A DNA stretch of 64,000 bases from Botryllus schlosseri (GCA_051294905.1 CM119386.1:8060001-8124000); one strand, 5' to 3'; shown: positions 2,892 to 34,440, numbered from the stretch's first letter. Program-made: numbers and translations. Notes: a model not told the origin generated them from the sequence alone.

Positions 2892-2998
2892 GCGCACTGA
2901 TTTCTCTGGGATAACATCTAAGCGACATAATCATTTTGAGATTACCCATAACAGGATCTATACACGCTTTAAGGAAAGTAACCGAATCCATTGCTAAC

Positions 2999-4047
2999 AT
3001 GAGTGCAAGAATATACCGCCGACGAGGTAAGAACACTAGCTATGGAATTGCGTATGTATGTGGGAATCAGGACTGTATATTGCCTGTGTACAGCATGTCG
3101 TAGAATTGTACAACAATTCCTGATCATAGCATTTCGAATTAAAATTGATATACCTGTTATTGATGATTGGATAAGATATATATATAATTTGGTGCGTGTC
3201 AAGTTGAGTTACACTCTGAACTATATCAGTGTGCATGCGCTGGCAACTTATGTATTACACCTCTTGTCACGCAGAGAGCTCGAGCACCACCGGTATCTCA
3301 CCATGCCAACAAACCAACGCGAGAATGCTACGCAAGCGCAGTTCTTGCGATGAAGGAAGGGAGAGCAGCTCTTGCGAAGTGTTCGTGGGGCCGTCAATCG
3401 CAGAGAACTCGCCTCTCGCCGATGCATTCCTCCACCAGTCATACGCCTCCGCGAGCTTGGTAACCTTCCTTTCGTCTGAATTCATGCATCTCGGTAAGAA
3501 ACCGAGGCGGTGTTCGCCAAGATCGTCTCGTTCTTCGTCATCATCATCCGACTCTGCTTCTGATTGTGAATCGTGCCTTTGCGAAGCTGTATTCGACATC
3601 ATCGAGCCTACCACAGTGTGCCCGGAAGAAGTCACTGTTGCTCCCAAAACAACCGTGAAACTCGTGAGAGAAAATACCAAAGTGTGGAACGTGTCTCGAC
3701 CGGCAGAAGGTCAGCGCATCACCGTCTCAACAGCTTCAGCTAGTCTCACCATCTGGGATTTGCCGGATGACATTTACGTTTTCGGAGTGGAATCGGGCGG
3801 CGTGACTTTCTATGTCCACACGCCGTCGCAAGCCGAAGACACATTCCTCATGCTGAAAACAGGCGAAAGCCTGGACGCTATTCAAGACCGGCATAGCGAC
3901 CCGAGATGTTTCAAGCATGTATACAAGGAAGAGCTTGGCAAGCAAGTTCTTCAGCCCGTATCGGACGACCAGCTAGGTGTAGCGCTGGAGGACGGATATG
4001 CGGTTGTCAAGCCGATAACTGACGCCGAAGGGTGGAAGTTGGAGTAA
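2999..4047 (+). CDS. Putative IL-1-like/beta-trefoil protein 1 (266 aa, leaderless, N-terminal propiece); exons 2999-3026, 3275-4047
   Basis: ATG at 2999 (MSARIYRRR), consensus donor AG|GTAAGA at 3027, acceptor cttgtcacgcag at 3274 joining in phase 1 to the long ORF; C-terminal domain shares IYVFGVE, FYV, SDPRCF, terminal GWKLE with two neighbouring paralogs; TATA at 2885 and AATAAA at 4055 and 4375. Coding status well supported; family assignment is inference from motif/strand pattern. Confidence 0.8.
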
Positions 4048-4305
4048 TCTCGCAAATAAATTCATTCACGCACTTATGCAATCATGTTTGCACATGAGAA
4101 TTTTAATGTTCTGAATTTATCACAGATTGTCGATACATAACTAACCGGTGCAACGAGCACTGATTTCGGTAAAGCAACATTATTGACTGTTTCGTCGAAA
4201 CTCGTCAACCCCATCTTCATTGGTATCATTATTTATAATACTACCTCGCGAATTGTACATTTATATTCTTTGGAAATTTAACGGTAAGGAACCGTTTATT
4301 CATTG

Positions 4306-4342
4306 TTTATTTATTTATTTATTTGTGACATATTTATATTTA
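4306..4342 (+). promoter_or_regulatory. AU-rich element cluster in 3' UTR of beta-trefoil gene 1
   Basis: Three overlapping ATTTA pentamers (4309-4321) plus two more (4332, 4338), upstream of AATAAA at 4375. Confidence 0.45.
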
Positions 4343-5072
4343 ATTGCACAACATTACTTCATTATGGATGCCTCAATAAACATTATGTTCGCGGTAGAAA
4401 AATCGAGTCCGAGAAAAAGTGTAGGAGGTTAAGTTGGATATAAACCCCGGAAAACGCCTTCAACAATTTCCCCAAGGATATCTCCCGAAATAACCTCCTT
4501 AGTTCGTAAGGTCAGAATGGAGGTGTCACCAATCAATAAGATATCAATAATCGTCAGATTATATTATCATCTGATCAAGACCCCACAAGTAGTCAAGTAC
4601 AATGCGATAAGACACAATGCGATGTAACTATAGCAACACGTGAATCAATTCTCATTGCTTCATACTGTGTCGCATCTTGTATGAACAATTGAACATTTTA
4701 ACTGAAATTTAGTCCACCATGGCGTATTTCTATCCAACATGTCGGTACGAGAGTTTGACAAGGCTGCGACAGTTTGATAAAGTTTATGACGGTACACTAG
4801 CGAAAGAATGCATTCGATAAAAGGGATTCATTCATTCGATGCTGGTCAATGAATTCATTCTACATATTTTGAAATGTCGAATGTTTTCTGCCCTTCAGCG
4901 CAATATGACTGCTGTGCCGTATAAAGATTTTTAACGATGTATATCAAATGAACAGAGAAGGTCATGGTCATGGTCATGGAAGTGCTTCCACTTTTCCGGC
5001 GTATTCAGGGTGGTTTTTCTCTAGTTGCAGCACTTACTCAATTAACGCAACTTTTCGGCCATACTTCTACGA

Positions 5073-5125
5073 CAGTGCCAGTTTTCAACCTTTTGACTTC
5101 GCGGACCCCCCACCCCACCCTTCCG

Positions 5126-5166
<41 letters not shown>

Positions 5167-5853
5167 GATAAGTTATAGTTCAAACATAGCTCAATTATCT
5201 TGCAACCGTCACCTGTCAACAAAATGACTTTTCTTGAAAATAACACAGCACTATTTATTTGGAACTAGGGAAAACTTCTATTATTTCAAAGCGAATTCTG
5301 TAGCTGCTAAGTGGCCGTGTGCTGAAAAGTCGCGTCGTGGATTCGATATAAACAAGTGCCTAAAATCCATTCCCACAAAGATAAGTGGTGGCGAATGTAA
5401 TAATAACGCTTCCGGCGATATCTTTGGGTATGATCGCAACGTATGTGGCATTAAAATTAAGAAACAGATTTCTAATGAACATATACCGTCCAGCCTACTC
5501 ATATCCAGCAGCTCATCTTGAAATGAATCTGGAATATCGGTCATTTATATCACAGGATAAATTTATCTTGACAAACAAATTTTTTCCAAAACCCAAACAA
5601 AAGCAGCAACATTTTTGTATTAGTAGGTTATTGGCAATTTGGCAATGAAATCCAGTTTGTGCAGTATAATATTCCATCTCAAACGGCCATTCTGTTTATG
5701 TGAGTCATCACGTTTTAGCAGTTATGAAGTGAAACGACATCGTGATTTTTTTCTAATTCAAAAAATACAAGTTAGCTTTCAACCATTTTTCTAATTTGGA
5801 AGTTTCGCAGACCCCCAGAAAATGCTTCGCGGACCCTCGGTTGAGAACCACCG
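5073..5853. mobile_element. Non-autonomous hAT (Charlie-like) element
   Basis: Ends cagtg..gttttcaacc / ggttgagaaccaccg, perfect 8-bp TSD ttctacga; contains (CA)n. Confidence 0.85.
5128..5163. repeat. (CA)n microsatellite
   Basis: Direct reading. Confidence 0.95.
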
Positions 5854-6547
5854 TTCTACGACAACCTCACCATATTTTGCTACTTGTCTACTGTTGGCAC
5901 CATTTACAGTTTTTCATCTAGAAGCATTATGCCCTTCCAATCAAAGAGATAGAGGCAAAGATGACGAAGTCTACGGTCTGTTTTCACAGAGATCTTGTTC
6001 AAATCAGGACGTCTCGCTTACGTGATCCTCCATATCAATAATTCGGTTAACTAATAAGACCTTCGTCGACAAAGATGCATCTGAGGTTAAATGAATCATA
6101 TATGTTTATCTCTAGTTCAGTCTTGACGGGTGCTGATTTCAGGGGTTCAGCTCTAGTTTTAATAGTGTGATATATAATATGATGGATTTGACTGTGACGT
6201 GAACTGTAATCTGTTATTTTTAAATTTATGAATTAGGTGCAGTGCAGTGGATCTTAACCTTTAATAACCTGGCGAACCCCATATTTTCGCCGAGTCTAAT
6301 TATACATCTACATTAGCGTTGCCCAAAATTTGGAAAATCTCAAAAAGGCTGCGTTTTAATGTCTCATTCTATAAGTTATTGAAAAGTCCGACAACGAGCC
6401 TGCAAGAATCTCACAGGAAAGTCGTTGAGATTTCGCGCAAATCGTTTGAAAGAAGCTGCAGAAGAGTGGGAGATCCACAAACCAAAGAATCGCGAGAAGA
6501 CCGGTAGTCGCGAAATCACCGCACATGACTGGTTAATCGGCTATGTT

Positions 6548-7100
6548 TCAATGATCACGAAAGCAGCGGCTTGCTGCTGACCATAGTCGCTCACACGAGG
6601 CCACATGCCACGAGCATGATAGTAAGGTATTGCCTAACATGGAAATGTCTGGCGCATTCCCCTGCGCGTCACCCCAAAAGATCATGGGGTTTGCTGTAAT
6701 GCAGGGTCCCCAAACTGAGCTATCTCCATCAAAAAGACCTGTTTTCATGTCACAGGCCATCCATTGCTTGACAAATTCGTGAGAAGTAGATCGCAAAGGA
6801 TACAAATCCTTGAAGCGCGAGGTCTCTTAGCTTTCGCCTGCCTTACTGATTTAAGCACTCATCACATCGATGTCCTCGCTCTTCTTAGTTGGGCATGTTT
6901 TGTTCTACGGCGAGCACTTTCTTTCCGCCATTATCATTTATTATTATCCAACATGAATAATGTTGACAAGGCGGACTTGTCCAACCGTCCGAAACCATCG
7001 TCAGATGTTCCGCCCTGTTGATGAACGATTGGGTAGAGGTATTCGTCTTTGCATGTACTATCGGTGATACCGACAAAAAAAACCTTGTTTTCTTCTGAGT
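6548..7100 (-). pseudogene. Degenerate, internally deleted hAT transposase remnant
   Basis: LTMVSDGWTS (first catalytic Asp motif) and NPMIFW...LLSC..HVASCERLWS (hAT C-terminal dimerisation motif) in broken frames only ~300 bp apart. Confidence 0.7.
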
Positions 7101-7278
7101 ATTTCAAATTCCGGCTGTATCGAGAGACAGAATTTTTGGAAATGTTCATTTTCCAAACAATTTCACGAAACATTCCCGCTTATTAGTACAAGAACTAAAT
7201 GCTAGTGTGCAGAGCTGACAGCAGCCTGATTAAAAGCACCACTTTTACATGTATGTAACTGATGTATTGCCGTATGAC

Positions 7279-7472
7279 CAATGTTCCCTCTAAGCTGCGC
7301 ACGTGCGCAAATGCGCAGTGCTGACACGGTCTCCGCGCACAGAAAATCTAAGTTGCGCACAAAAAATCCGAAATGATGATCTTATTTTTAGTCGTCACGC
7401 ACTGTTGTCCAAGGGTCTGCGCAGTGAGTTGGTGAGTGTGCGCAGACTCATCAAAAATTAGAGGGAACATTG
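7279..7472. mobile_element. hAT MITE
   Basis: 15-bp TIR caatgttccctctaa / ttagagggaacattg; TSD cgtatgac/cgaatgac (7/8). Confidence 0.85.
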
Positions 7473-7826
7473 CGAATGACTGCTGATTGCTGGTGCTGCT
7501 CCCGACACCCGAGCTGCATTCACTTTCATCGTCCTTTTCCAATTGCACGGGACGAGCGAATTTGCATTTGTTGCTCATAGGGGTCCTGCTGCACTCCTGA
7601 GTATGCTTATCATCATCCGCGAAACTTGTCCTTCAACTTCATTGGCACAATAATTACGCGTAGCCTTCTTATGTACCGGTAGTACACTCGAAGAACTTGC
7701 ACAGACTTATTTATATAAACCGAACGTTCACACCAGGGCGAGAAATTTATACGCTTTCCAGTAGGGTGGTATCATCGTGAGCCTGTAACGCTAATTTTGC
7801 GAAAACCTAGGCGGAAAAGATTCTAT

Positions 7827-7986
7827 CAGACTTGAACAATTATAAAATTTTCAACTTTTCCAAATTATATCAGAATTAGAATTATAGCTACAAAATTTTT
7901 TCAAAATTACATTAGAATTAGATCACCCGCATTTCGCTCTAATTAGTCTTATTAGTCAATTAGAATTAACTAGTTGTCCAAGTCTA
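7827..7986. mobile_element. Short deletion derivative of the CAGACTTGGACAACTAG hAT family
   Basis: Degenerate TIRs and AATTAG subterminal repeats shared with 38585-39435; no clear TSD. A further end fragment at ~8764-8900. Confidence 0.65.
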
Positions 7987-8262
7987 CTCGCGATTCGCGA
8001 ACGTGTCTGCTCTCTGGCCTCGAGTGGCTTACAAGCCTCCATGATTATGGCCCTATAGTGTCATCTAGCGTTACAGTTTTGGATTTTCGACCTGGTTGAA
8101 ATTGGGCCGCGCTGTGCCTATCGAGTCTTGTGAGCATTTGAGAGTTGAGAGCAACCAGAGTAAGCGATTTTCCTTGGGAATTGAGCTTGATCGTCCTTGT
8201 TGGAGCCACTTGCAGCGCGTTTAAATCTATAAATAGACTACCTTGTGCACGAGGAGCTATGC

Positions 8263-8360
8263 TAGGGTTACCATACGTCCTTGTTTAGGAGGATTTGTCG
8301 TCCTTTGTCAGGAAATTGAAAATGTCTTCCGATGACGCCTAAATGTCCTCCTTTTCGGCA
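8263..8360. mobile_element. hAT-Tip100-like terminal fragment
   Basis: tagggttaccatacgtcc end; similar inverted sequence at ~30010-30120 in an MTTP intron. Confidence 0.55.
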
Positions 8361-10676
8361 ATTCGTCCTCGTACATTCAATAATAGAGGATTGCATTAGT
8401 TTTAGAATTCCCATCACTTTCGATAATAGGCAATGTGCGTTTCAAGCTGGAGATAAAATATATTCCAAGATATTCCAGCAAACGGAATATTATCAATATC
8501 TTCTTATTTTATTCGTATATTTAGTCACGTCGGGCGATGTAAGATGCGGAAATAATTCAGGCCATGATGCTCATACCGAAACCTCGTATTTTGTGCATAT
8601 TAGACCGAAAATATACCTTATATAACTTAAGAAACGCACGTAGTTGCTTCACCTATATTTGAGTCAGCATCGGAAATATCCAGTCCTCAAATCAACGCAT
8701 CGCTCTATCTCTATACAGTATGACGGACAACGTCTGTGCAACAGCATTTCGGTAACAATCCGACAGACTTGGAAAACTAGATCATTCTAGTTGTCTAATT
8801 TCACTAAATTAGAGCGAAATACCAGTATCTAATTTTAAGATAATTTGTGAAATGTTTCTATGCTCTAATTTTAATAGAGTACTAATCTAATTTATTGTTT
8901 TCCTGGAAATGCCTGTGTCCGAGGCATAACACTTAGGTAGGAATTCTGGAATCGACTTCGGTCGGACTAGAATTCGCAACCCATTGTTGTTGCAACTGTG
9001 GATTTATACCACCACGCTATCTCACAACTGTTTTCTGAGCGTCCTGGCCGTGACAGTGACGGATAGTGTCTGGGCCATTGCACGACAAGGCAATACGCCC
9101 AAGCCTATTCATATCAACAATATTTTTGAACTGAAATCAATTTCAGCATTTCAAAATGCTTTATCAAGCGTTCTTCCGAAATCTCAAACCAGGTCGCTGG
9201 CCGCAAAATGTGACCTAGCGGGCTGCGTGTTGGTAACCGCTTGTCTAGCGCGAGCTCGAACTTTCCAGATTGCAAACGGAGTCCTTACATAACTACAGTA
9301 TGCCTCATGTAGAACGAAATTTTCACACGTTCACCTCTGGCTCAGGGCATAATCACTGGCACGACAAACCTGTTAAAATTTGAACAACTATCAATAAGCG
9401 ACGGCTCTCGGACCTTTCCCTCTGTCAAGGAATATAGGACTAAGGTAAACAATACTTTCCATATAAATCCTAAAGATTTGTTGCAGATTTTTTCTGGAAT
9501 TATTTCGGTAATACTTGATGGGGAAAGTCGATGCACACCGTGCGCGTGCAGTCGCGGTCGCGGAAATCTATAGTTCACTGACTGCACAATAAGATAGCTT
9601 TAGATGCCATGTGATCTTGTATTCGCTGATACAGTATTTCGTCATACATTTCTAATTTGATCCACATGATATCATGAATCTCGGCACCTGAACCACGATG
9701 CCAAATTATCTGATAGCCGAGAAGAAATAATGATGACATCACTAATAAGTACAAAGATCATATTTGTTTGCCTTACAGCCTCCTATGCACTCGATGTACT
9801 GATTCAAGCGAGTCAACCAACTACTAGCATGATATCTATGTCTTATCTATGTCTTATGATGATTTGGCTCATCGTTTCTTTATCGGCCTTAATCGTAGGC
9901 CATCGAAAATCGTCAAACAATCGCAAAGTTAGGCGAACCATTGTCTCCATTCTTGTAGGACCTTCGTTTTCTAAATCGGAATTACGTGTGATGTGCGATG
10001 AGACAGCTTACCCTTACAAATATCACTATATCGCGTGGTGGAAAAGGCTGAAGCCTCGCACTAGTCTGCAGTCGATTTTAAGAAGAAGACGCTGAGAATA
10101 GAAACCTAAATAACAAAAGTGCTATATGGAAACTGCATTGAGTAACATGAGTTGTCGAGACAGCACGATGTAGTGACTTGTGCATGTATTGCATGCAATA
10201 TTATGTTCCTTCAACGCGGTGGCCTGAGTTGCTGACAAAAGTACTTTCGATGCATGTACTATTGGTGTGATGCAGTGCAAGCTTAGGGCCGTTGTTTCTT
10301 CATGGCTTTTCTGCATTGAATAAAACTGATAATCAGTTGCAAGATGGTATGACAAGTTTTTCGGGACTTTATATGCGGTTCTATATTCATTCTGTAAACA
10401 TTGATTTCAACTGAATGACTGATTGGCGTGATTGTCTCTCATTTACGCGCGATAATATAATTATAAATAATAATGCTTTCAGTTGCCATGAGCACAATCT
10501 GTATGTCAAGTCTCTTCTCTGGTGAATTCGTGACCGATGTGATTTTGCGCGGGTTTTTCCAGTGTCGGCCATGGGATACTAGGTGTTTCCCCTTTCTATA
10601 ACAATTTGGTAAGATGACGTGATGTCTTATGAACGCGCAATGTGACGTTTCGTCAGAAGTTTTTTTACAGAGAATG

Positions 10677-10683
10677 TATATAA
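10677..10683 (+). promoter_or_regulatory. TATA box of beta-trefoil gene 2
   Basis: TATATAA about 90 bp upstream of the ATG at 10773; Dorsal/Rel-type GGGTTTTTCC at 10551-10560 and TGACGT half-sites nearby. Confidence 0.45.
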
Positions 10684-10772
10684 CATGGATGGTTTTAGTC
10701 ATCCTAGCACAACTGGAAAAAGAACTGACTTTGCAATTCTATTACTAACGAACTTGTCAACACCGATAAGAA

Positions 10773-11636
10773 ATGGATAGATTCCGTAACATGGTTACAG
10801 AAGTGACACATCGAAAGCAACAAGGTAAGTTCTTGGCCTAGGCTACAAAGCAGCGGCGATTGTGATATTTTTAGATGTATTGGCATCGTGTTTGTGTTCA
10901 CTCTACAATATTTATAGAGCCCTTTCTCTTCTATTTTTCAGGCGTAGCTACGGATTTTGACATACCAAGTATGGTGGAATCACTCAGAATGAGAGATAGG
11001 ATGCAAAACGGATATTGGGGTGAGTTTGGGTGCGAAATGCTCAAGGAACGCATGGAGACTTCGCTCGGGGAAAGTGACGATGAATTCGATATAAACGGCA
11101 AGGTACTAGAAAAGGAGCCGAAGTTAACGCGATCAATTGATCCCGACCGTAATGCAGGACGGACATCGAATGTTTTTCTGTCTCTCGCCACAATGCGATT
11201 CGAGAGGTCAAACGGCGCGAACAGTGTGAGTCTGGTAGACGATGTAAACACCGAAAACTCATGGTGTCCGGTGGAAGGAGAGCACAGATTGCAGCTATAT
11301 CCCGGCAGAACCAAATTTCTACATTGGGTAATAAGGGATGGATCTTCTGGTCCAGTCCACGTCTTCGCACTGGAAACTGACGCGGGAAAGCGTCGGTACG
11401 TGAGAACGGAAGACCATCACGACTTCCTTATACTCGAGGCGTCAGACGAGTCTGGTGAACCGGTTATTGACAGCAAATCCTCCGATCCCAGATGCTTCGA
11501 ACATGTTAGAATGCCACTCGCAGGGGGTGATAAAGTTCTACGTTCCCTACGTAAGCGCAAAGCCGTTGGAATAAAAAGAGGCTTTATCGCCGTAACTTCA
11601 GACGAGCAGGCGCGGTCGTGGCTTCTAATGACATAA
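10773..11636 (+). CDS. Putative IL-1-like/beta-trefoil protein 2 (248 aa, leaderless); exons 10773-10824, 10942-11636
   Basis: gaaATGG at 10773 after an in-frame stop, perfect donor AAG|GTAAGT at 10825, long polypyrimidine acceptor ending 10941, phase-1 join in frame; motifs VHVFALE, RYV, SDPRCF, RSWLL shared with paralogs; TATATAA at 10677. Confidence 0.8.
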
Positions 11637-12656
11637 TACAACGACCCACTCTATTGAATTTGTATGAAAAACATACATTATCTATTTTTCTATATTTTAC
11701 CAAGAGCATTTGCATTCGTTTGAATTCATTCGCATTTACATCTATATAAAACTTTCACTCTGCCTTTTCTTGAAGTCTTTACACAATCGACATATATTTA
11801 TATGCCAACATTTTCGCTATTCTGTCAATCATATGAGCTAAACATATATTTATTCTACAATTAATCGCTGTTATACTGCGAAGGTTTTTCTAATACACAT
11901 ATTGTACATTTTTAAAATGGTGGAAAGTAAAAGAAAGTCTGTTCCAATAGTTCTGTGACTTGAAGGCATAATCATAATTATAATAATTATTCACAATGAT
12001 TGATTAAATTCGATCCGCCGAAACGGACTTCTCAAAAACATCAAGCAGATCCATTCTAGAGCTCACTGATATATGGCGAGCGCGGCTCTACCCAGCGTGG
12101 ATATTAACAAAGATTTATAACAACACTTTAGTATATATGAAAGTCGGATTTATTGAGTGAAATCTGAAACTGAGTGAAGAATGATGGTGCAGCCTGATAT
12201 TCAAAACACGGAACATATATTACATTTCACTTGAAATATTCCTATACCTGCGATATAAGTAGTAAAATCCCAGGTCATTTTACCACGAACGTCGCGGTTT
12301 TTATTGTATTCAATTATAGGACATTAAACAATTCAGCCAGAGCATTTGCTTCGAGCTCTGTATACATAGGGTTGCATTAAATAAAATCAATTTAAAACAT
12401 ACATGTTTAAAACAAAGCCATTGTTTAAAACATGTTTGTTATTGCTTTTTTAGGTCATGACGTCACTATTATTCAATTGTGACGTCATAATGGATTAACA
12501 TGCACAATTGAAAATATAGGGTAAATATAGCTCCTTGGACGAAACATCGACGTAATATAGCTGTTGTACCGACTATTTTGAGGTTTCCAATAATCCAATA
12601 TCGTTTAAGTCGGCCTTTATAGGCCATATCGTCACCTCCGGTCAAATTTTTATGTT

Positions 12657-12811
12657 NNNNNNNNNNNNNNNNNNNNNNNNNNNNNNNNNNNNNNNNNNNN
12701 NNNNNNNNNNNNNNNNNNNNNNNNNNNNNNNNNNNNNNNNNNNNNNNNNNNNNNNNNNNNNNNNNNNNNNNNNNNNNNNNNNNNNNNNNNNNNNNNNNNN
12801 NNNNNNNNNNN
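12657..12811. other. Assembly gap (155 N)
   Basis: Direct reading. Confidence 1.
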
Positions 12812-12914
12812 CGTCCGTAGGCTCATACAACATGATATTTGGGAGGTATTTACACAATTATGACATAATTATACAATCCTAAAAAATTTGTGTTTTAAAA
12901 AAGGTCCGTTTAAA

Positions 12915-12985
12915 CAGGGGTGTCAAACTCAACTGAAGCCACGGGCCGGATTGAACACTTCAAATCGCTCGCGGGCTGCACCGAA
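12915..12985. mobile_element. hAT-Charlie-like terminal fragment
   Basis: caggggtgtcaaactc...gggccgga end motif; partner end not found. Confidence 0.45.
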
Positions 12986-13272
12986 ATTCCTCAATCCCAA
13001 AATACATGCTCTTGCTCCTCATCGCCGACCTCACTACTACGGTAGTGCATTGAAAAGCCCAGACTGAAAGTGAGTCGTGCTACAAGTCGGCAGCAAAGAC
13101 CACGATGGGAACGCTTGGGAGCGACAGAGAATGAAGAATGACTGCGAGAGCGTTTGAAAGACGTTCCCAAGAATACTGAAAACGCAAAGACTTCTGAACA
13201 TTATGAAATTCGTGTCGTGGAGCACAAGGCTAAAAGGGCGATAAGCTCCACTGTGTTGTACCCATTAATAAA

Positions 13273-13301
13273 TACATACATACATACATACATACATACA
13301 T
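13273..13301. repeat. (TACA)n microsatellite
   Basis: Direct reading. Confidence 0.9.
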
Positions 13302-13699
13302 GCTCTTGTTTTGCAAATTGGCAATAATACGATGATTGGCGGCGGCGATGACGGCGGTTAAAAGTTATAAACCGAGAAAACAGTGGCTCTAACGAGGATA
13401 TAAGTTGGCATATTTCGATGATCCCTTCGTTTTAATGATATATTGGCATCAACCCTGCATATGCGTCGTGAGAAATGCAAAAGATTTAACTGTAATCGAG
13501 GACGTTGGAATTTGCTTCGTATTGTTATATCGCGATTAGGGTTTATCTCGAGGCTGAAGACCTCTATTATATTTTCCATGTAATTTGCATATAAGGGTTT
13601 AGCATTCACGTTTTCGCTTCTGTGAAAAACTAGTTTTTGGTCAATGAAATGAATTTGCACATTCTTGCCTTCTCAGAATTGGGTGTCAATGCCAGTGAC

Positions 13700-14636
13700 T
13701 AGGGATGGTGTGAACCTCTGAAACGTTCAGGTTCGTGTGAACGCGAACCTTTTTGAAAGGTTCTGTGTGAACGCGAACGTGAACTTCGTGACGTCACGTG
13801 ACGTCATATTGCTAATTCCAACCCTACATTTCAGTGAAGTGATAGCCTTGCAATACCTAGCGACGATTCGGGCCACATAATGCCACAATGCTGAAATACC
13901 TATTGATGCTTTAAACGTGTACAGATGTATCAACTGGGACAATTTCGACGAGAACTTGCAAGGGAATATAAGCTTACGCCTTAACGGTCAAGGTCAGACC
14001 GGACAATGTATTCGGCGTCCCACGTATTGCTAAGTTGATATTGAGCAGAGTGTAAAACGGCTTTCCTTACTTGCTACCGATATTACCCCTTTAACAAGTT
14101 ATACAGCAGTAGCCAACACCCAAATCCACGGAGTTGGTTTTTATGATACAATAAACATATGAAGTCGAGATTGACCCCGTACGCCCGCTAGATTTTTTAC
14201 ATCAGACAAAGATATCAATTTCATTGATTGGTTGGATAAGAGTCATTCGCTGACTACCTACATGTAGTGTTTCGCTCTTGATGCAGTGTGATTGCGGGTC
14301 ATGCTCACAGCAGAGATGAGTCACTAAATATTCGCAAACGGAAAGCTGGATATTTCGAGCAAGCAGTTGTAACAAACAAGTAAAATGTTTGAGATTGTCA
14401 AGGTGCATGCTCGTTTAGTGTTGATTTTTATGCTGCCAGCGCCATGCATATACCGGGCCCGCAGTTGAAATGCAATAAATTTCAACCAAAGATGCTATAA
14501 TGAAGTGAAAATAGTAATAAATGAAAAAGGTTCACAGTGCAGAACCTACCAAGGTTCGTCTGTGAACGTGAACCTCTAAATATCTGAGGTTCACACACAG
14601 AACGCGAACGTGAACCTCACGTTCACACCATCCCTA
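13700..14636. mobile_element. Non-autonomous hAT (Ac-like) element
   Basis: 16-bp TIR tagggatggtgtgaac / gttcacaccatcccta, GAACGCGAAC subterminal repeats, perfect TSD ccagtgac. Confidence 0.9.
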
Positions 14637-14920
14637 CCAGTGACCTGTTCCTAATAGTGACCAGAAACCACAACACCACAGTCGGCCTATAAACATACTC
14701 GACATGGGTGGTCTTTAAGGACCATTCAATGGGAGTATTTCTTACTAAATATATCGATATTTATTAAAAATGTACTGGATAATACACGCATTTTTCAAAC
14801 TACCCAGAATTGCTTCGCGGACCGGATGCGACACGCGCGCCGTATGTTTGACACGCTATTAAAACATGTTTTAAAAAAAGTGACCCGACCCCATTTTTTT
14901 CGTCTGACTGCGCGCCTCAG

Positions 14921-14983
14921 TATGTATGTATGTATGTATGTATGTATGTATGTATGTATGTATGTATGTATGTATGTATGTAT
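14921..14983. repeat. (TATG)n microsatellite
   Basis: Direct reading. Confidence 0.95.
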
Positions 14984-15797
14984 AGCATACACCGTACAGA
15001 GGTATACAGTGAATTTTACAATGTACAATTGTATATACAATATACATACGAACAGTGAATATAATAGTAGGTACTAATAACACTATTTAAATGCGAATGA
15101 AATTTCGTCGCAAAATACAGTTATGGAATCACTGTGGTATACATTGTCACAACGAATGGTATTTGAAAAGCACCTTTGAAGTCAACCCATCTCCAGCAAG
15201 TTCATTACTCAGTAGGAGAAGGTTCAGAAATGAGCTGAATGACTGACGTAGTTTTCTTTCGTGATTGATCTGCATTCCCAAGTCAAATTCTCAGTTGCAA
15301 ATAAACCGTGTTTGCAAATCTCAGGAATGGAACATGCGAATGATGTAGAAGGCTGCGAAAGCCCATAAATAACATCGAAGCAAAGAGGCAAACAGGCAAA
15401 CAGTTTGAGCCGAAACAGGAATGCATTCCTATTCACGGATGGATCATCCTACATAACATGCTCAAGCTCACATATCATAGTCGAGTAACGCTTAAAGTTC
15501 ATTGCCGATGCCGGGGAATTTACAAAAATGATTATTTTGCAAGAGTCCGATCTTCCTAATGTCAAACGAGGTAGACAGACATGTGGTCATACCATGTTCA
15601 GAATTCAAAAAGTCTATATATTGTGAGCTCGGTACTTCCCGCAGAGGCGTATTAGGGATGTAGTTTTACACAGGTACTTTCCAACTTCCTTCGCACAAAA
15701 TACTTTATGGCTTATAACAATGTGATCCGAAAAAAGACTCAATAGCTGTGTTCTTGTTGCCTTATATATGATCTTGCGCTTGTTCCTTATCGTCCCT

Positions 15798-15805
15798 TAT
15801 AAATA
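15798..15805 (+). promoter_or_regulatory. TATA box of beta-trefoil gene 3
   Basis: TATAAATA about 46 bp upstream of the ATG at 15851; Rel-like GGTACTTTCC at 15673-15682 and GGGAATTTAC at 15514-15523. Confidence 0.5.
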
Positions 15806-15850
15806 ACGACCGTAGCGGAGAGTTGGCGAACACTATAAAGTAGCAGCGTC

Positions 15851-16585
15851 ATGAGCGAGAAGACGGTATCGGTGACCATAAGCACTGAACAGTTTACTAC
15901 TAGATCGCCGCCAGTTACTGAAATTCACAAAAAGACATACCCCTGGACACGGGAAAGGCTGGAAGATTTGCGACCACAAAAGACAAACTTTCGAAAGATA
16001 TCCGAGCTCCCGCCTCCAAGCTTGCAGCGGAACGTCGCCGATGAGATCGGTAGTTGCACAAGTACATGTAGAAAGATGATGCGAGGGAGAAAATGGGTGA
16101 AAATAAGGAGTGAGCAAACCGGGAATCTTTGGCAAATTCCAACGGACTTACCATCTACGACCATACCTGTGTCGCTCGAAGTCGCTGACTGGAACGTGTG
16201 CGACTGGGATCTGGGTGAAAATATTCACGTTTTTGCGTTCGAAGATAGAATAAATCAAGATATATACTATGTTAAGTATCGACAGCATGGTGAATCCCGC
16301 AGTTTGATAACAGCAAGTGATGATGTTGATCCGATGTCGCTAACAATGACTGAAATGAAAACGGACCTTCGATGCTTCCATCTTATTCGCGAAAGAGCGA
16401 CGCGCGACCGGAACGGGCGGGCTTATAACATGTGTCCGGTGTCAGCCCATGACATACCGAAAGACCAGCGCCCCGCTGTTGCGGAAGAAAACGGTAGTTT
16501 AGTAATAGTGCAAGGGCTGCGTCATGCTGTACAATGGGATTTGAGATATAGAAGTCGGAAACAACACCCGGAGTATAAATTATAA
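15851..16585 (+). CDS. Putative IL-1-like/beta-trefoil protein 3 (244 aa, apparently intronless, leaderless)
   Basis: 244-codon ORF in AT-rich DNA, TATAAATA at 15798, gcgtcATG start; motifs WDL, IHVFAFE, YYV, TDLRCF, CPVS, VQWDL align with paralogs 1 and 2. Confidence 0.78.
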   Translation: MSEKTVSVTISTEQFTTRSPPVTEIHKKTYPWTRERLEDLRPQKTNFRKISELPPPSLQRNVADEIGSCTSTCRKMMRGRKWVKIRSEQTGNLWQIPTDLPSTTIPVSLEVADWNVCDWDLGENIHVFAFEDRINQDIYYVKYRQHGESRSLITASDDVDPMSLTMTEMKTDLRCFHLIRERATRDRNGRAYNMCPVSAHDIPKDQRPAVAEENGSLVIVQGLRHAVQWDLRYRSRKQHPEYKL

Positions 16586-17714: not shown

Positions 17715-18868
17715 CTGCACGATCACAACTTTCACATGAGCACAAGATAGCACACATACAGTTGGAACCACGAAGGATGTATTAGAAACACAGGAACATA
17801 TCAATGCGGAAGGTAGACATCGCTGCAGACACCCTACGACAGGTCCCGGCCATTCCTGGAATGATCACCATAGAATCTCCCTAAATTTGCAGGTAGTGAG
17901 CACGCAGTATTGCGAGCTATATATCTCTAATTACCATCCAAGTGTCGTAACTGATGCGACGCATGCAAGAGAAATGCAGTCAAATTCTAATCATTCACAG
18001 TTCACAGCACACGTAGCGACTTCCAAAGTCAGCAAATGAGAGTGAAAGGCTGTCACAATTGCAAGACACATCTTCCAGCTTGGCCAAATGGTGCCACATA
18101 AAGCGATTTCGTGACCATAATCCAGACCGCATCCAGGGATGTAGGCCACAGCAAGGCATTTGCGACTCTCGCGATTGAAAGATACTAGTCGATAAATGCC
18201 CCAAGGATAACAGAAGCATACTGCATGACTTGACTACTCTAGATAACCCTGATGACTACGCATTGCGAGCTGATGAAGCCCGCTTGTATCCTTTGAATAG
18301 GTAGAAATTAGCTACTTAAGGGGCTAGGCTACCCTAGAAATTGAAAAAAAAATCAAATGTTTTTTATTGCCGATATTTGTTGTATTAGATGTCATCTTTC
18401 ATATACCCAAGTATTATAATCATTGAATTCACCTAAGTGTCACAAATTGATTTTTTCATGAGACTATGTAGTCAATCTCCCCCCTTAATAGTGAACTCGG
18501 CTACAACCACCGCGAATATCCGAGCCCTATATTACCTGAGGAGGATATCTATGGTGTAATCAACGATGCGTTACAACAGATCAAAACAAACGGTATGCCG
18601 GTCTCAGCACTTTGCAGCCAGTGGTGCCACTCCTAGTGTTTTAACACTAGATCTAGTGTTTTTTCGGTCGTCCTAGTGTTCTAGTGTTTTTTTTTTGCAA
18701 AATTTTGCTAATCTAGTGTTTTTCTGTAATTGTGCGAACAATGAATATTCTAACGTTATACTACTAAATTATACACTAAATTTATTGCTGATAAGGCGAT
18801 TTATTGTCTCTGACTGTGTTTGTTTTCAATAATTCCATGTAGTGGTGTAGTAACAACAAGCAATTAGT

Positions 18869-19140
18869 GAGAGAGAGAGAGAGAGAGATATGATATTCTT
18901 TCTCGCCTGCACCATCGAGATGCTTTGGCGACGGAGTTGCGATACGGCCCCATGAGGTCATCTAGTCTGCGGGCTGCGCCCCCGTTTTTTTTCTCCTCCA
19001 TGCTATCCGTGATTGCTGAGCGCCTAGCAGGATAGCTGCGGATACCATTTTTCGAGTCTTTGGTATGACCCGGCCGGGGATCGAACCCACGACCTACCGC
19101 TCGAGAAGCCGGACGCATAACCATTACACTATCTCGCTCG
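18869..19140 (-). mobile_element. tRNA-derived SINE, copy 1
   Basis: A-box-like tagtgtaatgg, B box ggttcgatcc, core cataccaaagac..ctgctaggcgctcagca, (TC)n tail; near-identical to 26318-26582 and 45424-45740. Confidence 0.88.
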
Positions 19141-19596
19141 TAACAGGGTACGCTGTGAATCCGTACTTATGAGCGAGAGTCTCTGATAAAATGAAGAGCG
19201 ATTTCGCTCTGATACTCGTGGTTTATTGTTGAACTCAGTCTGCAGATTCGGGCATGATTTTCATTTGCCGTGGACAGCATACTTTGGTGTCTTGAATCCG
19301 TTAACAGCCTTATCGACACAAAGAATAGTAAAATTAATCATTCCTCTAGCTGTGCAATTTCCCTCTGTGATATTGATGAAGTTGATGATTCGTCGGAAGA
19401 ATGGGCTGCTTTGGCAAGATCGCAAAATAAGCTGCAGGTTATCAGTCAATGCCCTCCAACAGAATTTTTGCAAAAATTGAAATATCTGTGCACAATGGAT
19501 TCGGTGAATCAAAATTCCCTTTACTGGGTAAGCTCATGATGAATCTCTTGGCATTGCCACATTCCACTGCATTCGTGGAAATGAAGTATGCTGTAC

Positions 19597-22226: not shown

Positions 22227-25200
22227 TTAGCTGTTCATAATTTTGCCACACATCACTGAATTGCCCTGCTGCAAGGGTAGAGTTTTGCCGAGATTTTTCG
22301 CTTTCCGCCTCGTGAGCGTTAAAAGTTTTCTGTGGGTCCCTTTGACCTTTTCGAATTTTCTCAATGATTTCCTGCAAAACGTTTACGAAAATGAGAAGGT
22401 TGGCTGCACACTGGTTTTGGTGCAATTATTCCAACCTATAGAGGCATTGCTGTAAGAGAGAAAAGTTTTGGATTTATTTAATAAAACTAAACAATAAAAA
22501 TTTACTGGCTACTCCATGAAATTGTTAGGTTGTCCGAAAATAACGATGCACAGCAAATTTGGCTCACCTCCAACCAGTACAAGCAAAGTTATTGGAGTAC
22601 AAAATTTTGGATTTGGAAAAAGTAGCGTTCACGGTGGCTAGTTCTTGAATTATTTATTACAAGTCTACCCACCGTAAATATTATGATTTGAAATCTTAAA
22701 GTTTGAACGTCAACGACTTCGTTTCCACTGGTTTGAATTGAGCCCAAATTTGGTTTGCAGCGTTTTTTTAGGTAAACCAATCAATTTTATCAAGTTATCA
22801 AGTAGACAATAGAATTTAAAAGAAGGGTATTTTTGAACAGCCCTATTATACATTGTTGGTGGCTGGTATATAATTGGTCCTAGGTTTTATCAGGGGTGTT
22901 CAAAGTACTCATCGTCGGCACTCATGTTTTTAATCAAGTAAAAACTGAACACTGAGTCGTCTAATATCATAACCAAGTGAAGAAGTACTACAAGTAGAGA
23001 AACTCTACTTGTAGCACTTTGAAAAGTAGAACTACTTCGTTACTGGCAACCTCTGGGTTTAATTAGGGTTCCATGGAATTGGAAGTAATGATCGAGACCA
23101 GACTTGTATCAACTACTGGATTATAAAATAGTGCAACTAGAACTAGAACTACTCAATTTTCAAAACCTGCAACTAGAACTACTCAAAAAAGACGTTAGTT
23201 AGTTAGTTGACCGTCAGCTAACTAAACAAGTAGTCTGTACGAGTCTCATCGAGACAGATAGAATTGAGAAGTATGAATTGATGACATAGTCCTAATCCAT
23301 AAGCGACAGTCGATTTGCCTACTCCCCACTGCCACTGCCCTAGGCTGAGCGAGAAAAAAGATTTGCGAGGGGCATGAATTTTCAACAAGGACGTGACGTC
23401 ACCAAAGCTAAGATTACAATTTCCAAATCCAAAATTTCTGAAGAAACAACGCCGCTTTGCGTATGGCTATGCCATTGTCTACTGCCCAGTCTAATTTCAA
23501 ACTCAAAACGAAAGCATTGGTCACTGTATCAACCACAAATTATGTGCTGACAAAGCTCTTACCTCATAAAATCTCAAATTACACCTAAATTTTAAACAGC
23601 ATACTTACGTGAACGTAAAATCTGGATATGATATCCTTATACAAGACTTTGGTGGTAGAGTTGAAAAACCAGTGAACACTGACAAATCGATAGAAGCCTG
23701 CATGTCAGCGGAATGACGGACAGAAGCGCGGACTATTGGCGATTCCAGCGACAGCCGGCATTGGACTGATAACGCTCCGCTGCCAAAAGGAAACGCGCAT
23801 CGTAAGATGCATGTTCTTTGACAAGAACGATCGAGACTTACCCGGTAGTGGTTACGATCTCAACAGTTCGACTCCAGAGCGAAAAATCAATTTCCGCGGT
23901 GATTTTTGTGGAAATAGCGCCCAACACTTCGGCTTTCACGCGCAGCCCTGACGCCATCGGTATGTGCTGCAAGATAGTGTTACGGTAGATATTTGCGCGG
24001 CAAAAAGTTTGATTTTGGTCAACATCACAGTTGATAGATGATAATTAATGATCACATATTATGTAATATACAGATTGCCACAAATTATGAAATACACACA
24101 TGTTCAGTGAGCCGAATGAGCAAACATTGTTCGCATTTGTAGTGTGACCTGGGACGGCTCATTTGATATCCATGCATACCACGGCACAATCAACATATCA
24201 TAGTGAATAGGTATGGTATGAAAGAGATGAAAGCATCGTTAATATTATGCATAGGAATCGGTGACTCAAATCTCAATAATGACGTCACAAACGCTTACTT
24301 CGAGATGATCCACCAGCATCAACATGGCTTCCACCCCGCTCGGTTCTCCGGAGCTACCCTTCCACGCCAGGGCCATCATCTCACCGTAGCCCCGGAAGAA
24401 GGTCAAAGGCCGTAATTTGACCCCCATCATGATGGACGACATTCCGACCATGGAGTCGAATTCCTCTTCTCCCGGATCGTGAGCACTGCCGATGAGAGAT
24501 TCCAGGCCTTGCACGACGATACCAGCCTGAAAGGAGAGAAGCCATAATGTTGCGGTGTACTGGTCAGTGGGGTTTTTCAGTTCAAAGATAACTTTTTTTA
24601 CTGAACAGCCCTCTTGTAGGACCAACTGAAAATAAGTTCTAAACTTGCTCCTATTTGTCGTCTCACTATTCATTTTACTTAGTCGCGAAGCTGAATCCTA
24701 CGATGAACTGTAAAAAGTATTCGAACAAATCTACTATTTTGAAACTGCGTACTTGATTAGATTTTGTAAATTCATTTTCTAGTTCCACTCAAAGTAGTTT
24801 TGATGACTTGGAAATCACTACTCTTGTTCTAATCAAGTAGAAATTTACTGTGTCGCTTCAACTTCGATAACGCCACCAGAATTTTACAGGGGGTTGTAAT
24901 CGTCGGCACAGAACAGTGATGTGTGTTCTTATATTCTTATATGGAGACACGATATTGATGGACTGAAAAAGCCTGGCCACCATGAGTTCTGAAAACTACA
25001 CTAGCTACATCTAGCAGCTTTAGTTCGCTTGATACATCAATCAATTCTCTATCGCAGAATAGCATATTGATGATGTATATTAGGTATGGCTGCAGCTATA
25101 TTTTTGTAACTGCCTAGGTACTTCATAGTAATATAGGTATGCTTCAAATATTTGGATATAGCCTCTATCATTAATGATCACATACATGTGAATAAAGTCA

Positions 25201-28200
25201 GTAGCTAATGTCAGTAATGATATTTTAGAATAGAAAAAAATATAACTGTGGATGACATACCTCAGTCAAAGCGATGGAGTTTCCTTGGCTGTGCAACGTA
25301 AAGTCAGAACCAGTCCGTCTCATCATGCCGGCGTTACTATATTCCATGAAAAGGCCGTAAGTAACGTGAGCATCGTCAGTACTAAAAGCAACAATCCGAT
25401 TAAGCCACGTGGACAGTGAAGAGCTAAGTGCAAAGATCTTACGAAAATAAGACTCCAGTGAAGGCGGAAGCCATCCCTGAATTTGCTAGCGTCCAGTAAT
25501 TTGAAATCGTGCGGTCTTTGAGCACTTTGAGAATCACATCCCTTGAGAAAATGGTAATAAATATATCTTCAATGTTATGATAATACATTGCTACAAAATA
25601 ATGATAGGATGACATTAAATTATCCTCCATACTATTTAGCATGAAATATACAACCTGAGCAGCATTCTCAGCGACTTACACAGATAACACATGAATCATT
25701 TATAGCCTCTTAGTAGTTTTGCAATGGCATGAAATAAAACTTCATAATTTAGGCGAAGTCTACCCAATATCCATATCATCTGCATCCGCACATTAGCTCA
25801 AACGCCACGAACTAAAAATATTTGGTGACTTGAAATTGACTCAACATTGGAAAATTTGCGTGACATGACTTGCGAGTCAACTTGAAAACTTGTGGTGACT
25901 CAAAATGACTTGATCCCAACACTGCCTCATACAGAGATAACATTGCTCATTATCGTAATTTCACTTTTTGAAAACAAATTTCGCATACTTTGAAGGATGA
26001 TTGGTCTTGATGATGTCCATTATTTTTTGATACATGAAGTTTGAAAATTCCTTTGATTTGTCCTCCGGCAGCGAGAGAAGAATGTTTCTGATGCTGACTT
26101 CGCTCGGGTTGTTTGTGAGAATTAAAATACCCGCAGCTGACCGGATGGTGTTGTCGTACCATCTGACGTTCAGATGGTAGATCCTGTTCATCACTGCATG
26201 AAACTGCAATAAAAATGTTATTACGACACTTAAAATACGTTCCTAATGACAGATGGCAGCGGATGGTTGGGATTTGTTGCTATTGTATTTTTCGCAGATT
26301 TAACTTTGTAGAGCGAGCGAGCGAGATAGTGTAATGGTTATGCATCCGGCTTCTCGAGCGGTAGGTCGTGGGTTCGATCCCCGGCCGGGTCATACCAAAG
26401 ACTCGAAAATTGGTATCAGCAGCTATCCTGCTAGGCGCTCAGCAATCACGGATAGCATGGAGGAGAAAAAAATACGGGGGCGCAGACTAGATGACCTCAT
26501 GGGGCCGTATCGCAACTCCGTCGTCAAAGCATCTCAATGGTGCAGGCGAAAAAGAATACCATCTCTCTCTCTCTCTCTCTCTTTTGTCATCTTGTGTTAC
26601 AATCCTGGTCTTGTGAAGTTTTGAATTGATAAAATTATCAAACAAAATCTCATGATCCGACCTATTTACCATGACAAAACTTATTCTAAGCAACCATAAA
26701 ATCAAAAATCTGGACACCACTGTTATACACCACTTTGCCGTTGTTGTTCGCGATATTCATGGTGTTTTTCAACTACATTCGTCATTTACTCCAGGCCGAT
26801 ATTCTCTGTTATAATTGTGTATCTGCCGACTTGTAGCATGGCCCACTTCTCGTATTTTTTAAGACACCGCTTACTCAGATCTGTTAGCAAGTAATAGCCT
26901 AGATCAGTGGTTCTCAAACAATTTTTTACACGCCCCCTTAATGATGGTGATAAATTTCGCGCCCCCCTCATCGTGATGTCACAAAATATCAAAGAGAGCA
27001 ATCAGAATTCTAGCAATCCCAACGGATAGTTTGATGGCATTGAAGGTCATCGCTGTTGATGAGAGAATTCTCAAATAGGAAATTAGGACAATAGACAGAG
27101 CAATAAACATGAGGTGGAGGTAAATCGCGCTGAGAACCACTGGCCTAGATAAACATCCTACACTTGGGATGGAATTCTGGACTCGACCACGGTAGGACTC
27201 AACCTCAAAACTAATTTGTGCTGCAGCTGTGGATCAACCTTATTGAAATTAATTCTGTATGAAAAAATAAACACGGACGAGTGATTCATATCACAGACTT
27301 TCAAGTTATTGCTTTACAAACTTACGTCGCTTCCAAAATGCTTCGAGTCGAAGACAGTCAGTGTGGTGAGAGCGTGATGGCATACAAGATCGAATTTGCT
27401 CTTCTCGGCCAAATGAACGAGACGATTGATGAACTCGGGCATGCCGGAATTTCTCGCGATCAGTATGTGATGGTTTTGGGTTTCTTCCGTGGTGGACTGC
27501 ATGAAGCCGTCTTCTATCAGACGAATGATCTTTTGTGGAAGCTGCGGCAAACGGAAAAGATATTACTTAGCAGGTTTTTTTTTCATTAGGTAATCAGTGA
27601 AGCGATAGTATTACCTAGCAAGTTATGTTCACACTTGATCATTTCCCATTTGAGGTACAATGAACCACAAAATTTATCAATCATGGCTTATGTGCCATTC
27701 CTAAGGCTGGGAACAATGATTCGAGTATTTGATTGGAATAGGGTTTTAATTGTAATGAGTCAGGTCTAGTAGTGAGAGATCAGAGTGACGATTTTTTCGA
27801 GTTCGAAATTATACGTCTTTTGCAGGTTGGTAACCAAGTTGCAAGGTTGCGAGTCGCAAGTCAATCTCACTTATATAGTTTTGACTCGAGTCAAGTCAAG
27901 TCATTTTTAATTCACGACCGAGTCAAGTTCGAGTCCAAGGCAGCTAATAGAGGGTCGAGTCTGAGTCATTATGTTCACTGTTCAGTTTTCAGTACAATCC
28001 AGTTCAACCCATTTTTTTCAACTCTGCTTGAGTGATATAGAATGGCTCGCATTCATAATATAGTAATTTTCCTCAGTCTTAACAGTTTCTGGCCCTATTT
28101 TCCAAGTATCAGGACTGATAGACGAAATACCAATAAGTTGGTGACTTTACTATTCTTCAAAGTTACAATGAAATGTCTGTCTTGGTAATCCTAGCCTTGA

Positions 28201-34200: not shown

Positions 34201-34440
34201 ATAATACTCACCGACGTCCGAGTGGCGCGTGTGAACTTTAGCATCCGTCGGCACGTCGGCTTCGTTCAGTTCCACTTCGGCTTCGTAGCTGTATTGGTAT
34301 ACTTTCGTCGGATCCAAAGACTGTCCCGATACACCCGCTGAAGCTGCTTGTGCGAAGCCACGCACAGCAAAACAACAGCACGAATGAAAGCAAGTCGCGC
34401 AGATCATAAACATGTAAGGTAGGATTCGCGAGGGCCTCAT
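22227..34440 (-). CDS. MTTP: Microsomal triglyceride transfer protein large subunit (~915 aa, 19 exons)
   Basis: Exons (descending): 34212-34440, 33749-33831, 32848-32976, 31985-32092, 31798-31914, 31018-31163, 30564-30649, 30413-30498, 29618-29778, 29373-29541, 28801-28914, 27326-27541, 25989-26203, 25443-25541, 25261-25381, 24299-24526, 23842-23966, 23609-23779, 22227-22371; all GT-AG, phase-compatible, total 2748 nt. Peptides match MTTP landmarks in order: NIKRGILGFFQ, EDLSGKCNITY, SCVHGEESFTSPNKVLG, DILAAAQTESSQDALLEYLD, FSSHPSEKVL, RSAAGILILTNNPS, VKLRPLTFFRGY, FSLW, LPLQQGNSVMC. Confidence 0.95.
22480..22845. mobile_element. Diverged copy of TAGGGCTGTTCAAAA MITE family in MTTP last intron
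   Basis: Right end atttttgaacagcccta and internal palindrome homologous to 19597-20193. Confidence 0.65.
22891..23055. mobile_element. hAT MITE
   Basis: Ends caggggtgttc / gcaacctctg; AGTAG/CTACT repeats; TSD ggttttat/ggtttaat (7/8). Confidence 0.7.
26318..26582 (+). mobile_element. tRNA-derived SINE, copy 2 (MTTP intron)
   Basis: Same head, core and (TC)n tail as copies 1 and 3. Confidence 0.88.
26905..27142. mobile_element. hAT-Charlie MITE
   Basis: TIR cagtggttctca / tgagaaccactg; perfect TSD gcctagat. Confidence 0.9.
27828..28290. repeat. Remnants of the GAGTCAAGTC-rich hAT family
   Basis: Degenerate tcgagtcaagtc arrays at ~27828-27975 and ~28195-28290 like the ends of 56524-57497; another end fragment at ~25820-25924. 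Confidence 0.55.
33144..33398. mobile_element. hAT MITE
   Basis: TIR cagaggtggt / accacatctg, AGTAG/CTACT repeats, perfect TSD gatattac. Confidence 0.85.

Follow-up and report, generated by a model that had tools for sequence, protein, structure and literature searches.

In a stretch of 64,000 nucleotides of the Botryllus schlosseri genome (GCA_051294905.1 CM119386.1:8060001-8124000; hereafter the window), three co-oriented genes, g1, g2 and g3, are arranged in tandem between positions 2,999 and 16,585. They encode members of a real and new family of leaderless beta-trefoil proteins, the named members of which are known so far only from ascidians. The C-terminal domain shared by these proteins is, as modelled, a 12-strand beta-trefoil without an internal sequence repeat. 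Due to a consistent but narrow structural preference for the interleukin-1 (IL-1) family, together with the layout of the proteins, the genes are put forward tentatively as plausible candidates for tunicate IL-1, which would represent a strongly diverged, PDZ-less branch of the IL-1 superfamily with the trefoil on one exon.

Three genes with a shared C-terminal domain

The scan of the window for open reading frames (ORFs) resulted in only three longer than 240 residues, all on the plus strand: 3229-4047 (g1), 10875-11636 (g2) and 15851-16585 (g3). Their lengths were 244-272 codons, and all the other ORFs had 144 codons or fewer. The full genes are 2999-4047 for g1 (spliced, 266 residues), 10773-11636 as predicted for g2 (about 248 residues) and the ORF itself for g3 (a single coding exon, 244 residues). 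In the alignments, g1-g3 shared the motifs W-D/V-L/I, [IV][YH]VF[AG]xE, YV, D[PL]RCF, V/A...G and a terminal WxL, in the same order and in the C-terminal part only. The BLASTP E-values were 6e-8 for g1-g2 and 3e-5 for g1-g3, and the g2-g3 comparison was not significant by itself. A prior reading of this DNA (the sequence-only reading) had described three co-oriented genes with common motifs confined to the C-terminus, and the ORFs, the alignments and BLASTP bore this out.

Relatives in ascidians and in the genome

Word-index protein searches with full-length and core alignments were nearly empty, serine-rich words swamping the candidates, and the family was recovered by exhaustive HMMER alone. 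The search of 1.84 billion representative proteins with a four-sequence profile yielded nine true relatives with E-values from 2e-29 to 6e-4. P0001, translated from an assembled contig of 1.5 kb, was identified as the g3 orthologue (E 2e-29), and P0007 was dropped as a coiled-coil false positive. The named relatives are all listed as 'uncharacterized protein' of Styela clava or Ciona savignyi, and the literature search with their accession numbers found no paper. None of the 20 cores and none of the 13 full-length members matched any Pfam family.

The B. schlosseri genome contains seven copies on three chromosomes (C16, C11 and C12). The fourth copy, g4 (L004; G000:C16:8049244-8050059), is located 11 kb upstream of the window. 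The two C11 copies, detected by the profile search of the genome, are 18 kb apart, and the C12 copy (L012; G000:C12:5921359-5921775) is the most divergent one in the genome. Tandem clusters were also found in two other assemblies: a contig (L005) carries four co-oriented copies and an S. clava locus carries three. The branches of the family tree were very long (median 0.96 changes per site) and the deep nodes were unresolved. Four groups were well supported: g1 with g4, g3 with P0001, the C11 pair with P0010, and the C12 copy with the C. savignyi protein. The last pairing (P0009/P0014 = H2YZ47/H2YZ46) had a support of 95/93. Therefore, at least one subfamily seemingly arose before the two ascidian orders separated, and the pairing suggests that the family as a whole predates this separation. 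Both the tandem clustering and the rapid evolution that had been anticipated were evident.

Predicted fold of the C-terminal domain

The AlphaFold2 model based on four sequences was of no use (pLDDT 35). With the 20-sequence alignment, the overall pLDDT was 74, and residues 47-150, comprising strands 4-12, reached about 90. These strands were modelled exactly at the positions assigned to them by the sequence-only reading, from which a beta-trefoil had been proposed, and all the top structural matches were beta-trefoils. The model also contained a short helical turn in the loop between strands 7 and 8. No internal three-fold repeat was detected by hhalign among the thirds of the family profile (probability <1%), which makes the domain like IL-1 and unlike typical ricin-type lectins.

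The Botryllus histocompatibility factor (BHF) was considered as a possible identity of these proteins because of its length of about 250 residues, the lack of a signal peptide and three N-terminal cysteines. BHF is described as consisting of disordered regions and alpha-helices, and its gene lies within about 110 kb of HSP40L (PMC12065747). Since the present family is a beta-trefoil and the nearest DnaJ gene is about 740 kb away, the identity was rejected.

Gene structure and expression

The g1 gene has a TATA box (TATATATAA) at 2883-2891, as read from the sequence, about 50 nucleotides upstream of the first transcribed base seen. Exon 1 (2939-3026) starts where the spliced contig starts and comprises the 5' untranslated region and 28 coding bases at 2999-3026 (MSARIYRRR and one nucleotide), followed by GTAAGA. 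The ATG at 2999 is the first of the transcript. In the contig from run X5, 2939-3024 was joined to 3273-3590; when the cut is moved two nucleotides to the right, the parts become 2939-3026 and 3275-3590 and the ends GT..AG, which defines a phase-1 intron of 248 nucleotides (3027-3274). The contig from run X6, which belongs to another study, starts at 3273 with a loose end that corresponds to the final letters of exon 1 (CCGCCGACG), so that the spliced transcript was seen in two studies. Exon 2 (3275-4047) encodes the N-terminal part, rich in Ser, Arg and acidic residues, and the entire trefoil, up to the stop codon. The trefoil domain was assigned to 3607-4044 by the family-profile match, the AlphaFold2 model and the fold searches, with a pLDDT of about 90 from 3733 on. 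A polyadenylation signal (AATAAA) is present at 4055-4060, and the contigs reach 4107. The 266-residue model proposed earlier for g1 proved exact, as the assembled contig spans the intron.

For g2, a two-exon model with a short first exon and a product of about 248 residues is proposed from the sequence. A TATA box is read at 10677-10683. The putative exon 1 (10773-10824) has 52 coding bases, giving MDRFRNMVTEVTHRKQQ and one nucleotide, and is followed by GT at 10825, the phase being the same as in g1 and g4. The predicted phase-1 GT..AG intron would span 10825-10941, and exon 2 (10942-11636) would run to the stop codon with the trefoil encoded by 11202-11630. The g3 gene consists of one coding exon with the trefoil encoded by 16070-16546. 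Its ATG is the first one after a TATA box (TATAAATA, 15798-15805) located 46 nucleotides upstream. The g3 sequence was present in at least 14 assemblies of the same organism (6-57 Mb) from six studies. As these sizes are far below that of the 495-Mb genome, the assemblies are most likely transcriptomes, and the presence of g3 in many of them suggests that g3 is expressed.

The short first exon is a common feature of the family. The g4 mini-exon encodes MSSRRYRRR, corresponding to MSARIYRRR of g1, and the splice acceptors are homologous. In two S. clava genes, exon 1 has 34 or 37 nucleotides and is followed by a phase-1 intron as in g1. In g1, g4, these two S. clava genes and, as predicted, g2, the phase-1 intron after the mini first exon is the only one. 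Between g1 and g4, dN was 0.34 and dS 1.11, resulting in a dN/dS of 0.30; both genes are under purifying selection.

These data bear on the explanation that there is no functional family at all and that the genes are chance ORFs, pseudogenes or ORFs of a repeat element. Such an origin could account for their absence from the protein collection searched by word index and for the low g1 read depth in two raw RNA runs. It is contradicted already by the homologues in other species, the spliced g1 transcript, the g1/g4 dN/dS value and the shared gene structure. The genome, moreover, holds just seven copies, and the three ORFs stand out in a DNA of 40% GC. This explanation is regarded as scarcely credible.

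Layout of the protein

The proteins are about 245-285 residues long, with 90-140 residues in the N-terminal part. In 13 family members, hydropathy revealed no signal-peptide-like or membrane-spanning stretch: the maximum 12-residue Kyte-Doolittle mean in the first 45 residues was 1.3 or lower. The leaderless nature assumed for the three genes was thereby supported. Across the 13 members, the N-terminal parts (25-180 residues) are of low complexity, with much Ser, Asp, Glu and Arg as well as basic patches (RKR, KKPRR). The motifs R.R/RKR, CEVF.GP and L[IV]DFL, the latter followed by a Ser/acid tract, are kept across species and are encoded at about 3290-3500 in g1. The L[IV]DFL motif with its tract resembles a SUMO-interacting or similar docking motif. 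The C-terminal domain of about 145 residues has the consensus W..V / L..WKL....VFGF....YYV / L.L...G..P / SD.RCF........G...L.P / A..W.L, with the Asp and Arg ahead of strand 8 unchanged in all 20 sequences. IL-1alpha and IL-33 are likewise built of an N-terminal pro-region and a trefoil at the C-terminus, which speaks for an IL-1 affinity.

The same layout could belong to an ascidian-specific intracellular trefoil protein unrelated to IL-1, for example a nuclear or cytosolic adaptor. Much of the function would then reside in the N-terminal motifs, with the trefoil serving to bind proteins, as in FRG1, fascin and the intracellular fibroblast growth factor (FGF)-homologous factors. The absent signal peptide, the basic patches, the conserved N-terminal motifs with their Ser/acid tract, and the failure of profile searches to link the family to IL-1 are all compatible with such a protein. 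In the comparison of g1 with g4, the N-terminal part is also better conserved than the trefoil (dN 0.22 vs 0.45). The nuclear signals, however, do not discriminate, as IL-1alpha and IL-33 are nuclear as well, and tandem expansion with long branches fits genes of immunity or defence better than housekeeping adaptors. In each of the four structure libraries, the IL-1 family also ranked ahead of FRG1, fascin and FGF. An adaptor of this kind is therefore considered a fairly unlikely alternative.

Affinity to known trefoil families

In the Foldseek search of the PDB, the first three ranks were taken by IL-18, IL-36gamma and IL-1Ra (E 0.014-0.05). Among the top 30 matches to the Swiss-Prot AlphaFold models, 26 belonged to the IL-1 family and none to FGF, although the library holds many FGFs. 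The shape search of the ESM Atlas placed the IL-18 cluster first (TM 0.63 and 0.59), and IL-1 also ranked first in the second look by VIA. In these searches, the top-ranked structural neighbours of the predicted model were IL-18, IL-1Ra, IL-36 and IL-33. The sequence-only reading had expected the top matches to be IL-1 rather than FGF, fascin or lectins. This was the case in four libraries; in the representative search, lectin-type trefoils tied with IL-1.

The FGF family was weighed in the form of a divergent member without a signal peptide, similar to FGF1/2 or to FGF-homologous factors. The D-x-R-C-F ahead of strand 8 recalls the FGF motif D-E-C-x-F-x-E, a resemblance which does not constitute a test. 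Besides the missing FGFs among the top 30 Swiss-Prot matches, the Pfam FGF profile (PF00167) detected none of the members, and the domain of about 145 residues exceeds the length of the FGF core. An FGF identity is considered highly improbable.

A stronger competitor is a lectin or protease inhibitor with a defence role in the cytoplasm. Like CCL2, clitocypin and cospin of fungi or MytiLec and SeviL of mussels, which have no signal peptide, it would bind glycans or block the proteases of parasites or predators on cell damage. CCL2, clitocypin (I48), cospin (I66) and the ricin-B-type HA33 are beta-trefoils and the nearest language-model neighbours of the family; the clusters closest to g1, g3 and P0003 were ricin-B-like, CCL2-like, I66 and I48 (0.84-0.91). 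The trefoils of HA33, CBM13 and CBM42 were those that tied with IL-1 in the representative search, and rapid evolution in a tandem cluster is in keeping with a defence effector. Fungal trefoil lectins and inhibitors are cytoplasmic and, like the ascidian proteins, have no signal peptide. The ascidian family differs from them in the lack of the three-fold repeat and of the (QxW)3 motif, and none of the 20 members matched the Pfam lectin or inhibitor families, including Ricin_B_lectin and RicinB_lectin_2. Its conserved residues are mostly core hydrophobics and a single D-x-R before strand 8; three polar sites equivalent to one another are not seen. Those families are not known to have a long N-terminal part that is conserved and disordered. 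Taken together, a lectin or inhibitor is an unlikely identity of these proteins.

Several results weigh against the assignment to IL-1. The Foldseek E-values were 0.003-0.1, none of them reaching 0.001. In the representative search, the Z scores were 8.4 and 8.3 for lectin-type trefoils, 8.2, 8.1 and 8.1 for IL-1, 7.6 for FGF and 7.6 for fascin; the families tie within 1 Z, and IL-18 leads the lectin-type trefoils by about 1 Z. The matches to AlphaFold DB clusters came from mixed families, and this holds in favour of a lectin or inhibitor as well. The language-model neighbours of g1, g3 and P0003 were ricin-type, CCL2, I66/I48 inhibitor, CdtA and fascin/FGF trefoils, never IL-1. The first 46 residues of the model were of low confidence; within this poorly modelled part, three or four further strands are marked by hydrophobic positions that alternate and are conserved. 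The IL-1 profile PF00340 had no match among the 20 cores (E<=10), the 13 full-length members (cut-offs 10 and 0.1) or in the whole genome. No PDB sequence was matched by the 20-sequence profile at E<=10, and the four-sequence profile gave nothing meaningful. No PDZ domain was found by Pfam in the 13 full-length members. The trefoil is encoded by a single exon in g1-g4 and the two S. clava genes, compared to 3-5 exons in IL-1. The family loci on C16, C11 and C12 were not linked to the TIR genes found, which lie on C13 (GCC2, ESD, TRAF3 and EIF2A were not searched), and the gene adjoining the family is that of the microsomal triglyceride transfer protein (MTTP). The raw bulk RNA of 2026 contained few g1 reads in one sample and zero in the other, and the expression of g1 in these samples is low.

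The strand 9 sequence was also compared with IL-1. This strand (KQVLQP in g1) ends with L-x-P, or with L-Q-S, L-H-S or I-Q-S in some members, and seemingly falls where IL-1 has (F/L)ES. Leu is kept, Glu is absent and Ser is rare. The conserved ending at this place speaks for IL-1, and the approximate form of the motif, the exact one of which does not occur, speaks against it. From the S-D ahead of strand 8 up to and including strand 10, the sequence presumably gives a gap-free alignment to human IL-18 (SD..FF...K..FES...A), and one almost as good to FGF2; it is taken as a lead, not as evidence. Overall, the membership in the IL-1 family proposed by the sequence-only reading agreed with the top structural ranks of IL-18, IL-1Ra, IL-36 and IL-33, and it found no counterpart in sequence matches, the structural margin being about 1 Z.

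Candidate receptors

The genome was also searched for IL-1 receptor-like genes with Ig-like and TIR domains, as had been suggested. All the TIR matches were on chromosome C13 and comprised three Toll-like receptors and one candidate with an Ig-like part, a transmembrane stretch and a TIR domain. The candidate IL-1 receptor-like gene is located on the minus strand at about 4383-6881 of L016 (G000:C13:1762000-1771999), which corresponds to about 1.7664-1.7688 Mb of C13. Its exons encode an Ig-like motif (VVISC ... DPQTYVC), a transmembrane stretch (AVIVIIVIVLFLVVSLYCL) and TIR (FDAYVS box). Pfam recognized TIR on the next exon (E 4e-7), and the Ig part was unconfirmed by Pfam on the short exon pieces. 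The candidate is unlinked to the family loci; the search thus provided a possible receptor and no linkage between ligand and receptor.

Three tandem TIR exons were observed on the minus strand in L014 (G000:C13:3084000-3093999) and at C13:3075887-3076162. The tandem C13 genes were rejected as IL-1 receptor-like because in the gene examined, leucine-rich repeats and a leucine-rich repeat C-terminal cap precede TIR, as in a Toll-like receptor.

Other features of the window

The only run of N in the window is an assembly gap of 155 N at 12657-12811, between g2 and g3. The gap begins 1,021 nucleotides past the g2 stop codon and ends 3,040 nucleotides short of the g3 ATG. No family-like ORF was found on either flank by hmmsearch --max with the family profile in every frame with the filters off. 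As the gap is intergenic and its flanks contain no family ORF, the uncertainty is confined to the distance between g2 and g3.

The adjoining gene on the minus strand (24269-34455) is the MTTP homologue, the exon of which at 24269-24697 matched Pfam MTP_lip_bd (E 2e-19). The ORF at 34171-34455 on the same strand looks by eye like the MTTP signal peptide and the start of the lipoprotein N-terminal domain, and it had no Pfam match. At 4597-4628, outside g1, about 30 nucleotides had very high read depth in all four runs, and the reads continued into unlike sequence on both sides; this is a short repeat common to one or more abundant RNAs from elsewhere. Oppositely oriented repeat copies with the translation ...SVMVMxPASRAVGRGFDPRPGHTKDSKxGI... 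were detected at 18867-19166 (minus strand) and 26304-26621 (plus strand), probably representing a dispersed element similar to short interspersed nuclear elements. A (CA)n microsatellite follows g1 at about 5100-5170, and a tandem repeat of about 8 nucleotides, translated as HTYIHTYI, precedes g3 at about 14880-15010. Antisense ORFs were present opposite the Ser-rich N-terminal coding parts of g1 (3267-3680, minus strand, 137 residues) and g4 (L004 1428-2006, minus strand, 192 residues). With their acidic runs (DDDDEE), they are most simply explained as by-products of serine codon runs and not as genes.

Discussion

The proteins described here resemble the vertebrate IL-1 superfamily (PF00340) in the lack of a signal peptide, in the combination of an N-terminal non-trefoil part with a C-terminal repeat-less trefoil of about 150 residues, in the tandem gene clusters and in the fast evolution. 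They differ in having no detectable sequence similarity to it, in L-x-P/S instead of (F/L)ES, and in the one-exon trefoil.

A closer comparison is offered by IL-1anc, the IL-1 homologues of invertebrates and lamprey composed of PDZ and trefoil (PMC13736523, Nat Ecol Evol 2026). Their defining features are PDZ, an FES motif, linkage to IL-1R, GCC2 and ESD, and a trefoil encoded by 3-5 exons in which two central intron phases are conserved (PMC13736523). The IL-1 family being the nearest structural neighbours was a criterion for IL-1anc, and the published invertebrate IL-1anc also fail the PF00340 profile (PMC13736523). PDZ was lost independently in several lineages, leaving a subset of IL-1anc without it (PMC13736523). 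The ascidian family is similar to IL-1anc in being recognisable by predicted structure and not by sequence, and IL-1anc are likewise cytosolic or nuclear precursors with a C-terminal trefoil and lineage-specific expansions. Unlike IL-1anc, it has no PDZ (13 members), no 3-5 exon structure with the conserved phases and no TIR linkage. The survey of 2026 reported IL-1 homologues across Eumetazoa from cnidarians to lamprey and none in Ciona, Botryllus and Styela (PMC13736523).

Of the readings compared, membership of the candidates in the IL-1 superfamily is the most probable one, although it is held tentatively. The tunicate branch would then have lost the PDZ domain, and a single exon would encode its entire trefoil. 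In analogy to IL-1alpha, IL-33 and IL-18, a cytosolic or nuclear precursor may be made, which might be released through cell damage or unconventional secretion. The N-terminal part could be cut off in the acidic linker before the release, and the freed trefoil would have an Ig-TIR receptor as its target. For these proteins, we infer a descent from IL-1 as well as release, processing, receptor binding and an immune role.

In tunicates, IL-1-like activities and anti-IL-1alpha-reactive molecules have been described without a gene (PMC9020223, PMC5465252). A more far-reaching proposal, which we regard as doubtful, is that these genes encode the IL-1 cytokines long sought in tunicates. The IL-1-like activity would then stem from them, as would the anti-IL-1alpha-reactive material released by botryllid morula cells in allorejection, with PDZ and the introns lost, perhaps by retroposition, before the tandem expansion.

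Reports of IL-1-like activities in tunicates date back to 1989, and IL-1 receptor-like genes are reported for Ciona, where no IL-1 ligand gene is known. An unannotated family with transcription seen for g1 and a predicted fold nearest to IL-18 and IL-1Ra provides a concrete set of genes for this question. If the genes do encode tunicate IL-1 cytokines, they would fill the sole chordate gap of the 2026 survey. If the link to IL-1 fails, the family would still be new to Pfam: a beta-trefoil with an unusual conserved disordered N-terminal part, the named members of which are all ascidian.

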